NCBI RefSeq assembly: GCF_021869535.1
Contig: NW_026262690.1
Span: 103,788,001-103,852,000 of the forward strand
DNA: 64,000 nt
DNA from: Mytilus californianus
Taxonomy: Eukaryota
Reading direction: 5' to 3'
Shown here: positions 6,446 to 8,003 of the stretch, piece by piece
Position numbering within the stretch: the stretch's first letter is position 1
How the letters are laid out: every line of letters starts with the position of its first letter
The notes under the pieces: generated by a model
Databases searched by the model: none
The model's input: the letters and a program-made list of their open reading frames with translations, nothing else
Told to the model about the DNA's origin: nothing
Program-made: the position numbers and the translations under genes

Positions 6446-8003
6446 TTTTTTTTTTTATCTTTATTATATTCACACTTTGTATATACATATCACAGATTAC
6501 AATTACAATTACACATACATGAAAACATTGTAAATAATTACTGTCCTTTCTCTGAAATGAATGATATTCTAAGTTTTACAATCTATATATTTACTTATTT
6601 TTTTCCCTAACATAACTCTCTGATAATGAACTTGTGTATACTTAAATCTTCTACTCTTTTTTTTTTTTTTTACTTTTTCTCAATTTTTAAATAAAACAAT
6701 AAAAAAACAACAGTTCAACTATTACAAGGATGAAAGAAACTCAAAATGTGTAAATACGCAAATGATCTATTTTAATTAATGTTCGTTGTTTAAACAAAAA
6801 ACGGTTGGTTTCCAGACCAGAATTTTGATACATCACAAGAATTATTTTAGAATTATTTCACGTATTCAACATGTATTGTCCCCCCCCCCCCCCCCCCGAT
6901 AACAGTTTATTCATCAAAGCACCACAAACAAAGTCTATGTATCTCTGCGTATCTTTCCATCCTTGGAATACCACGAACGTAACAAATAATTTCATCATCG
7001 TCCGATTTTCTAATATCTCTAAATCTGTTGACGTAAGACATTGCGTTTTCATATTCCTTTTTATCAGTTTCTAAATTTATATGACGAGATTCACCACGTT
7101 TCCCTATAGTACACATGACTACCGTGTCTCTCTTTTTTAATTTTCCTATAATACAACTTCCCTCTGATCGTCTGCTAAAAACTATTTTCTGAAAATGACT
7201 ATCTGTACACGGACTCTTCCCTGTAATTATTAATTTCGGAGCGATAGTTTTTATTTTATCTATTTCTCCATTTTCTTTATCCTTAACATCCGTGTGTAAA
7301 TTCCGTTCAGTTCGCGAACCTTGACACACTATACTTTCCGTTATTTCATTGTCCTTATTAATTGTTTTGTCCAGCGATACACTACCCGGCTGAACAACTT
7401 TCACTACAGGTGTAATGTTTACTTGTTTAGGGGCTACTAATGGGAGATCGATCTTTCCATCGTGTAGCATATCATCACCCGAATCCATTACCACTTCTGA
7501 ATTATCGATGTTAATATCAAGTGTCTTATCAACGTCGTCTTCTGTATTGTCTATTCTTTCTTTCAATGTTTTCATCCTTTTATTGTCTCTGTCTCTATTA
7601 GATCTGGACTTATGCTTTATTCCTCTATTGATGTGTATTGAATCACCCCTTGTCCAAACCAATGAAATTCTCATTTTGTCACCAAGGTAATTGGAATTCC
7701 ATGTAAATTGTTCATATTCATCTATGATACTGTTAATTAACGCAACTAAAGGCTTTGGCAATTTTTCCATTATGATTTCCCTTTTAAGTACCTCAACGTT
7801 TCACAGCAAAAAGTAAAGTTACCAAACAACAAATACGCACAGCATAATTCTCAAAAATGTCAGTATTTCAACTTACATTACTGTTAGGTAGTCACATTTA
7901 CTTATCCCGGCTGGTTATATCCAAATCCACAAGAAATAGTAACCCAATAACAAGAGTAGAAAATTACACGTCTATATCCGATTAAGGTGCACTCGACTTT
8001 TCA
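6446..8003 (-). mobile_element. E1: 1.56-kb polyadenylated non-autonomous retroposed element with one ORF, inserted in tRNA-Lys
   Basis: Minus-strand 3' end AATAAAGAT(A)11 abuts tRNA nt 22; array resumes at 8004; no RT/EN, LTR or TIR visible; about 233-nt 5' UTR, 864-nt ORF, about 460-nt 3' UTR. Confidence 0.85.
6907..7770 (-). CDS. 287-aa protein of unknown function carried by E1
   Basis: Intact ATG-to-stop ORF in the same orientation as the A tail. Likely folded N-terminal region (LPKPLVALINSIIDEY...KHKSRSNRDRDNKRM), acidic low-complexity linker, and a C-terminal region of about 100 aa. No CCHC, RT or APE motifs. Confidence 0.7.
   Translation of the reverse strand: MEKLPKPLVALINSIIDEYEQFTWNSNYLGDKMRISLVWTRGDSIHINRGIKHKSRSNRDRDNKRMKTLKERIDNTEDDVDKTLDINIDNSEVVMDSGDDMLHDGKIDLPLVAPKQVNITPVVKVVQPGSVSLDKTINKDNEITESIVCQGSRTERNLHTDVKDKENGEIDKIKTIAPKLIITGKSPCTDSHFQKIVFSRRSEGSCIIGKLKKRDTVVMCTIGKRGESRHINLETDKKEYENAMSYVNRFRDIRKSDDDEIICYVRGIPRMERYAEIHRLCLWCFDE

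Follow-up and report, generated by a model that had tools for sequence, protein, structure and literature searches.

E1, a Protein-Coding Retroposon without Reverse Transcriptase in a tRNA-Lys Gene of Mytilus californianus, and Its Putative Tx1-like LINE Partners

The window examined was a stretch of 64,000 nucleotides (nt) of Mytilus californianus DNA (assembly GCF_021869535.1, contig NW_026262690.1, positions 103,788,001 to 103,852,000 of the forward strand), to which the coordinates below refer. The first 24 kb of the window are a tandem array, in which the unit is 1132-1135 bp long and contains a tRNA-Arg(TCG) gene on the plus strand and a tRNA-Lys(CTT) gene on the minus strand. Between nt 21 and 22 of one of the tRNA-Lys(CTT) genes lies E1, a poly(A)-tailed insert of 1558 bp (8003..6446, minus strand) with one intact open reading frame (ORF) of 287 amino acids (aa). 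The features of E1 and its junctions, in the sense direction of the element, are as follows.

8004..8260: array segment repeated at the 5' junction of E1, 257 bp, a copy of 6189..6445 (sequence read directly)
8003, minus strand: sense 5' end of E1, which starts TGAAAAGTCGAGTGCACC
7771..8003, minus strand: 5' untranslated region (UTR) of 233 nt, with AGTCGAGTGCACC at 7998..7986 and an AGACGTG box at 7973..7967
6907..7770, minus strand: ORF of 287 aa, intact from ATG to TAA
6457..6906, minus strand: 3' UTR of 450 nt, with its end AATAAAGAT at 6465..6457
6881-6898, minus strand: G18 tract (C18 on the plus strand) in the 3' UTR, 8 nt past the stop codon
6457..6560, minus strand: conserved 3'-terminal module of the E1 family, ending ..CTGTGATATGTATATA..(about 12 nt)..TAATAAAGAT and containing AATAAA and five UGUA motifs
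6446..6456, minus strand: poly(A) tail, A11, of which the last A is possibly A21 of the tRNA, so that the junction is ambiguous by 1 nt
6396..6445, minus strand: 3' part (nt 22-73) of the tRNA-Lys(CTT) gene interrupted by E1, identical to the intact array copies and included in a partial Rfam tRNA match at 6402-6460

The repeat at the 5' junction takes in one whole tRNA-Lys gene (8211..8285). It represents either a target duplication of 257 bp or, equally, a deletion of 878 bp into the next unit, which the tandem array makes indistinguishable. In the original prediction, which was made from the window sequence, the array was said to resume 260 bp before the cut; the repeat is present, and its length is 257 bp. 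Relatives of E1 carry AGGGAGGGGGA in place of the G18 tract, which implies that the tract has expanded in the E1 copy.

No reverse transcriptase (RT), endonuclease or other domain was found in E1 by Pfam search, and the 287-aa ORF is the sole one of at least 100 aa. Rfam detected no ribozyme and no RNA family in E1, only the flanking tRNA pieces, and the fold of the 5' UTR was ordinary (z = -0.46). When E1 was compared with the rest of the window by BLASTN and TBLASTN, the sole match was the poly(T)/ATCTTTATT tail at 24061. Direct reading, the Pfam search and the ORF list bear out the initial description of E1 as 1558 bp of DNA without RT or endonuclease, with an intact 287-aa ORF and an A11 tail at the target nucleotide of a long interspersed nuclear element (LINE).

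The E1 family and its protein

A protein search with the E1 ORF identified 17 relatives (283-340 aa, 41-85% identity) in Mytilus galloprovincialis, M. coruscus and unannotated ENA/Logan assemblies, and a profile search of 1.84 billion representatives yielded 66 clusters, with full-length members of 255-340 aa. None of the 66 clusters contained a fusion to an RT or endonuclease, and none exceeded 340 aa. The DNA around 12 of the proteins was fetched and read (loci labelled L0xx). The copies read share a single-ORF layout, start with (A)AAGTCGAGTGCACC and end with ..CTGTGATATGTATATA..TAATAAAGAT(A)n, and because the same termini recur in more than 20 other genomic copies, chance is not an issue for the ends of E1. 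In M. galloprovincialis (L001-L003), BLASTN homology to E1 extends from window position 8000-8002 down to the poly(A). Two distant subfamilies, represented by L017 (265 aa, 25% identical) and L018 (274 aa, 24%), have the same plan, and their last 40-100 nt are nearly unchanged. Across subfamilies whose proteins are 22-25% identical, TGTGATA, TATA and ATAATAAAGATAAAA are invariant in the alignments of the 3' module, and in all close subfamilies the AGACGT box lies 25 nt past the start of AGTCGAGTGCACC.

Poly(A) was found 350-600 nt past the ORF, with no ORF2, in over 20 genomic copies that represent several subfamilies. Short-read contigs with an E1-type ORF were nearly all 1.0-3 kb in length, which fits a short element. 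A metagenome scan for the E1 3' box gave 0 matches, and a protein-guided metagenome scan gave a single short contig with a match to the E1 family. In the copy and junction check by BLAST that had been proposed for E1, many copies with the same termini, a number of them with tRNA junctions, were found in M. galloprovincialis, M. coruscus and unannotated assemblies. On sequence grounds, E1 is a full-length member of a family of mytilid mussels that had no previous name, namely coding retroposons of about 1.5 kb that lack an RT, and E1 itself is probably still coding.

Target duplications of 14 bp (L015), 12 bp (L017), about 12 bp (L002), 14 bp (L004) and 12 bp (L023), such as target-primed reverse transcription typically leaves, were recorded, and a few extra 5' nucleotides were frequent. 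An E1-family copy of M. galloprovincialis (L016:4650-6430) has about 90 nt of matching flank on both sides, which is either a long duplication or the result of insertion into a tandem repeat, and is comparable to the repeats of 257-316 bp at E1 and at the LINE E2 of the window. Separately, a different sequence with the same 13-mer start, AGTCGAGTGCACC, was found directly upstream of a P0010-type copy (L006:434-847); it may be another retroposon family with a common 5' terminus.

The protein is conserved across many subfamilies down to about 20% identity. Four regions stand out in the alignments: the N-terminus (MxxLPxxL.., DKMRISLxWT) is conserved, the basic stretch after it (K-S.., R-D-x-K-R) invariant, the acidic linker variable and the C-terminal domain, of about 100 aa, again conserved. 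The AlphaFold2 (AF2) model, computed from 32 sequences, contains a helix and beta-hairpin at aa 6-39 (predicted local distance difference test, pLDDT, 80-87), a basic helix at aa 56-76 (KHKSRS..RDNKR), a disordered linker, and a domain of four strands and two helices at aa 193-277 (pLDDT >90). An RNA-binding role similar to that of the LINE ORF1 protein (ORF1p) is proposed for the E1 protein. Matches to polo-box, PUR-repeat and PWWP-like structures were at noise level, and no fold was assigned from them. The closer subfamilies keep SPCTDSH and a C-terminal LCPWCF (LCLWCF in E1; aa 188-192 and 281-284, approximately 7209-7195 and 6930-6919, minus strand), which together form a possible C..H...C..C metal site; the motif is absent from the distant subfamilies.

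The ratio of nonsynonymous to synonymous substitution rates (dN/dS) of the E1 ORF was 0.29 against L001, 0.55 against L002, 0.30 against L015 and 0.33 against L004, and the proposed comparison among copies gave a pairwise range of 0.2-0.55. Between E1 and L001, the proportions of synonymous (pS) and nonsynonymous (pN) differences were 0.237 and 0.079, respectively, a difference estimated at about 5 standard errors. Broken copies were also present, as is to be expected of a transposon: stops or frameshifts affect the two copies at L003 and the C-terminal ends of L002, L015 and L016. The substitution ratios indicate that the E1 ORF is under purifying selection, the pattern of a transposon whose active lineage needs its protein. 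The ORF had been described as a cargo gene, a term that does not suit the element's own long-conserved gene; it is no passenger picked up by a vector.

Target nucleotide in tRNA genes and co-resident LINEs

Approximately 16 independent insertions of the E1 family were read, 8 of them in tRNA genes. At least six tRNA species are struck at nt 21/22, as listed here.

tRNA-Lys(CTT): window
tRNA-Gln(CTG): L001, L017
tRNA-Glu(TTC): L002
Intron-containing tRNA-Met(CAT): L003, with two copies amplified with the array
tRNA-Val(AAC)-type gene: M. coruscus, L015 (reported as Ile(AAT) by ARAGORN in intron mode; anticodon read as AAC)
tRNA-Phe(GAA): L018, L021/22

In all eight tRNA insertions, the junction follows the D-loop GG(T/G)(T) at the conserved A21 (nt 21/22, the end of the A box), and the element has the orientation of the tRNA. 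The L021 and L022 loci (ENA ERZ21930238, contig ctg23490l) are two identical E1-family copies 10 kb apart in a tandem array with a unit of 572 bp. The units of this array have the 5' part of tRNA-Phe, to approximately nt 26, joined directly to post-tRNA sequence, and ARAGORN detects no tRNA in them; they are tRNA-Phe pseudogenes with an internal deletion.

E2 (tail at 12792), E3 (24061) and E4 (32896) are LINE insertions of the window whose tails lie at the exact tRNA-Lys nucleotide used by E1.

12792..20478, minus strand: E2, a Tx1/L1-like LINE at the same tRNA-Lys nucleotide, with a CCHC-containing ORF1 and an ORF2, in pieces, with apurinic/apyrimidinic endonuclease (APE), RT and zf-RVT; tail TTAATGAT(A)n
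24061..24200, minus strand: 3' end of E3, a Tx1-like LINE in decay that also lies at this tRNA-Lys nucleotide; tail TAATAAAGAT(A)7
32896..38749, minus strand: E4, which belongs to the LINE family of E3 and lies at a tRNA-Lys remnant that has diverged, with fragments of ORF2 and of a CCHC-containing ORF1; tail TAATAAAGAT(A)6

Exo_endo_phos, RVT_1, zf-RVT and zf-CCHC were detected by Pfam in the ORFs of E2; the label Tx1-like, as applied here to E2-E4, reflects domain content and not a clade phylogeny. The 3' ends of E3 and E4 align with a score of 348 against a null of 24 and belong to one decayed family, and the last 10 nt of these elements, TAATAAAGAT followed by (A)n, are identical to those of E1. 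In M. coruscus (L015), a LINE resembling E2 (78% aa identity) ends at GGTTA|TCACATCC of a tRNA-Val gene, and an E1-like copy occupies the same nucleotide of the next tRNA-Val gene 1.6 kb away, the LINE being one array unit upstream. A single cleavage site thus serves elements of the E1 type and LINEs alike, in at least two tRNA species and two mussel species, and this is the core evidence that E1 borrows the endonuclease and RT of a LINE.

The proteins of E1 and of the LINEs are distinct. In agreement with the initial reading, the 287-aa protein has no visible likeness to the ORF1 and ORF2 proteins of the window, the BLASTN and TBLASTN match being to a tail only, and it has no CCHC knuckles, as no zf-CCHC was found in it by Pfam. 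Comparison of the family profile with the ORF1 of E2 by hhalign gave a probability of 0.2, or no relation, which, with the lack of nucleotide similarity, upholds the view that E1 is not a simple deletion derivative of these LINEs.

Approximately 40 nt before its tail, E2 has a stem-loop (window 12799-12860, minus strand), CACCAAUGAG/GGAUGU/CUCAUGGUG, with z = -2.4, and in the M. coruscus relative (L015:3030-3100) compensatory changes preserve the stem, ACCAAAGAG..CUCUUGGU. The stem-loop is likely to be an RT recognition element of the E2-type LINE family; it is absent from the 3' end of E1. A 3' RNA structure common to E1 and the LINEs was considered and rejected, the E1 end being unstructured (folding z = +1.08; RNAalifold, 0 pairs and no covariation). 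The TATGTATATA core, which is also present in E2, was likewise set aside, as there are 4 occurrences of it in the window and the alignment does not rise above null.

Approximately 29 nt from its 5' end, E2 carries GGACGTAATTTTC (approximately 20445-20450, minus strand), with a GGACGT box at a distance similar to that of AGACGT in E1. Internal Pol II promoters of insect LINEs use a downstream promoter element (DPE), and the E1 and E2 boxes resemble a DPE in their position, at a promoter-like distance. At the other end of the family elements, UGUA occurs 2-5 times per copy upstream of AAUAAA against 0.9 expected, with a per-copy P mostly >0.05 and copies that are related to one another. The 3' box is compatible with a self-contained polyadenylation module, and a role of UGUA as poly(A) enhancer is kept as a suggestion.

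Of the remaining ORFs of the array, one of 105 aa (5716-6033, 8666-8983 and 12062-12379, minus strand) recurs in each unit; it lies antisense across the tRNA-Arg gene and is no gene but a mechanical ORF.

Proposed mechanism and rival explanations

It is considered likely that E1 is a coding, non-autonomous non-LTR (non-long-terminal-repeat) retroposon of mytilid mussels, mobilised in trans by a tRNA-gene-specific Tx1-like LINE, with co-targeting pointing to the trans step. E1 would be transcribed by Pol II from an internal promoter at its conserved 5' end, comprising AGTCGAGTGCACC and the AGACGT box about 26-30 nt downstream, and its RNA would be polyadenylated at its own AAUAAA-GAU-(A)n end behind the conserved UGUA-rich box. 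The 287-aa protein may bind its own RNA in the manner of ORF1p or Gag, by means of its basic helix and its pair of small folded domains, and the resulting ribonucleoprotein (RNP) would capture the APE endonuclease and RT of a co-resident Tx1-like LINE, as co-targeting suggests. The candidate partner is a LINE of the E3/E4 type, with which E1 has the terminal UAAUAAAGAU(A)n in common; the E2 type is the alternative. Insertion would proceed by target-primed reverse transcription at tRNA nt 21/22, after the A-box/D-loop GG(T/G)(T)A and in the orientation of the tRNA, a step to which the junctions attest. The outcome at the junctions is a poly(A), a few extra 5' nucleotides, and a duplication of 12-14 bp in single genes and, apparently, of hundreds of bp in arrays. 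The choice of target would be set by the partner LINE and not by the E1 protein, given that most insertions of one subfamily are scattered outside tRNA genes. The coding hitchhiker on Tx1 machinery put forward in the original prediction accords with the multi-copy family, the fixed termini and the co-targeting in two species, whereas trans-mobilisation itself is deduced.

Several observations weigh against this interpretation. Beyond the last 10 nt held in common with E3/E4, no 3' sequence or structure common to E1 and the window LINEs was found, and local alignment of the last 300 nt of E1 with every LINE of the window was at null level. The usual tail mimicry between SINEs (short interspersed nuclear elements) and LINEs is therefore absent. 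Lack of mimicry points to poly(A)-dependent capture, perhaps helped by the terminal 10-mer; a poly(A)-only ('relaxed') mode of capture would need no tail mimicry. Furthermore, eight insertions (L004, L006/8, L007/9-11, L016, L019, L020, L023/24 and L027) lie outside tRNA genes, the majority from one subfamily (P0010 type). Insertion at tRNA nt 21/22 is therefore strongly though not exclusively preferred, and the preference depends on the subfamily. Strict site specificity is not supported, as these insertions make up approximately half of those read. The function of the protein finds no support in homology: Pfam searches with the E1 protein and three distant relatives returned only a sub-threshold mCpol match, taken as chance, and an ESM atlas feature search returned weak Ulp1-protease rows only (scores <=0.79), which were discarded. 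Structure prediction, which had been proposed as a check, gave confident N-terminal and C-terminal domains, but comparison of two AF2 models with PDB (Foldseek, VIA-wide), AFDB clusters and the atlas revealed no significant fold (best Z, 4.1). Finally, a promoter role and a poly(A)-enhancer role are proposed for the conserved ends from motif position only, and the excess of UGUA is modest.

An unseen autonomous LINE lineage with the 287-aa protein as its ORF1 could have given rise to E1 as an ORF1-only derivative of the HAL1 or HeT-A/TAHRE kind, with RT supplied in trans. The layout of E1 matches that of HAL1 and HeT-A (PMC5753468, PMC5537684) in having a 5' UTR, one ORF with a basic segment that looks nucleic-acid-binding, a 3' UTR and poly(A), and the (G/A)GACGT box lies at about equal distance from the 5' ends of E1 and E2. 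LINE ORF1 proteins are also very diverse, and unlikeness to two LINE families leaves room for a third. This origin is nevertheless rather unlikely: more than 20 copies of several subfamilies end in poly(A) 350-600 nt past the ORF with no ORF2, the 66 protein clusters do not exceed 340 aa in length, and the ORF-bearing short-read contigs are nearly all of 1.0-3 kb. Moreover, the E1 protein has no likeness to the ORF1 of E2 or of E4, and the E1 UTRs are not colinear with the window LINEs, the short (G/A)GACGT box being all that is common with E2.

The polyadenylated, intronless, single-ORF structure of E1 is also that of a processed retrocopy, and L1-group enzymes make processed pseudogenes (PMC3747384), so repeated uptake of the mRNA of one host gene, or of a small family of such genes, by the LINE machinery was considered; a host mRNA retrocopy had been the second alternative at the outset. 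The deeply diverged, multi-copy family with fixed termini effectively refutes this explanation. Subfamilies with proteins 20-45% identical keep the exact 5' terminus, the 3' box and the layout in independent insertions, which implies that the retrocopies themselves must be sources. Among the 66 clusters, in a search that was not genome-exhaustive, there was no intron-containing homologue, and the sole multi-exon gene model (L020) is an annotation stitched across an element copy. A dN/dS of 0.2-0.5 across many copies is likewise unexpected for host mRNA retrocopies, and a host origin is judged very improbable. Also improbable, although slightly less so, is that the ORF is a gene useful to the host or to the partner, such as a tRNA-gene targeting or adaptor factor or a LINE regulator, with E1 and the LINE forming a mutualistic pair as proposed for HeT-A Gag and TART. 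The long-term conservation of a protein without a catalytic domain, the co-occurrence of E1 and LINEs in the same arrays of two species and the HeT-A precedent (PMC5537684) are in its favour, but one subfamily is mostly outside tRNA genes with an unchanged protein architecture, which argues that the protein does not set the target.

If E1 is mobilised in trans by a Tx1-like LINE, a further and distinctly tentative proposal is that its protein represents a new class of retroposon RNP protein, unassigned in structure, that replaces ORF1p or Gag. It would allow an RNA without RT to beat the cis-preference of tRNA-specific Tx1-type LINEs, possibly repaying the LINE as HeT-A Gag is proposed to do for TART, and the pair would constitute a natural two-component system that writes any RNA with E1 ends, together with the protein, into tRNA nt 21/22. 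Were the protein to give RNA access to a foreign ORF2p, it would offer a handle on circumventing cis-preference, and E1 would be a minimal natural donor (about 230 nt of 5' end, the ORF and about 100 nt of 3' end) for insertion at a specific site of a safe, multicopy target.

Relation to known systems

The principle that RT-less coding non-LTR elements parasitise co-targeted LINEs is already known; what distinguishes E1 is an orphan protein under selection in an RT-less retroposon with a precise tRNA-gene target in common with Tx1-like LINEs. To our knowledge, RT-less protein-coding non-LTR elements are rare, and in the textbook cases, HeT-A and HAL1, the retained ORF is the partner's own Gag or ORF1. 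E1 retains an orphan ORF, whose product is predicted with confidence to have two small domains and has no relationship to the ORF1 of the LINEs at the same target. In the open-access literature, no coding non-autonomous partner of tRNA-associated LINEs was found described, nor was the E1 protein family.

HeT-A, at the telomeres of Drosophila, is abundant, site-restricted and non-autonomous, lacks pol and is believed to depend for RT on TART or TAHRE, autonomous elements with the same target (PMC5537684). E1 resembles it as a polyadenylated non-LTR element with one ORF and no RT or endonuclease that has the same target as RT-encoding elements, although the restriction of E1 to this target is only partial. 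The HeT-A ORF encodes a recognisable Gag, akin to the Gag of its partners and with CCHC knuckles. The E1 protein, in contrast, has no CCHC, no Pfam match and no likeness to the ORF1 of its putative partner LINEs. HeT-A adds to chromosome ends, whereas E1 is found at an internal, endonuclease-defined nucleotide of tRNA genes. HAL1 is a non-autonomous L1 derivative that encodes ORF1p only, is poly(A)-tailed and is mobilised in trans (PMC5753468). It is a deletion product of L1 with L1 ORF1p and L1-derived UTRs and is not site-specific, whereas E1 shares neither ORF nor UTRs with the adjacent LINEs. Because homology of its ORF to Gag or ORF1p was looked for and not found, E1 is a member of neither group.

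Short internally deleted elements (SIDEs) of R2 and R2/R1 hybrids are reported as short elements at the exact target nucleotide of the partner LINE (PMC3414825). They are non-coding products of internal deletion that keep the 3' UTR of the partner and the 5' ribozyme, whereas E1 is coding, has no ribozyme and has 10 terminal nt in common with one LINE family.

Among LINEs associated with tRNA genes, Dewa, of the Tx1 clade, targets the spacer of tRNA-Leu arrays (PMC3706591), and NeSL-1_TV (tRNA-Pro), LIN15_SM (tRNA-Arg) and LIN25_SM (tRNA-Glu) are site-specific (PMC4640811). The NeSL and LIN elements have a restriction-like endonuclease and one tRNA species each, whereas APE-type LINEs and E1 are found here at nt 21/22, in at least six tRNA species. 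The E1 family thereby provides independent read-outs of the specificity of the partner endonuclease, at one structural position past the A box in at least six tRNA species, and the target range is broader than that of the tRNA-associated LINEs found described, each of which is tied to a single tRNA or spacer.

SINEs, like E1, are short, dependent on LINEs and often numerous. They are, however, non-coding, with a Pol III head that comes from tRNA, 5S or 7SL and, as a rule, a tail taken from a LINE, whereas E1 is without such a head and carries a 287-aa ORF that is under selection.

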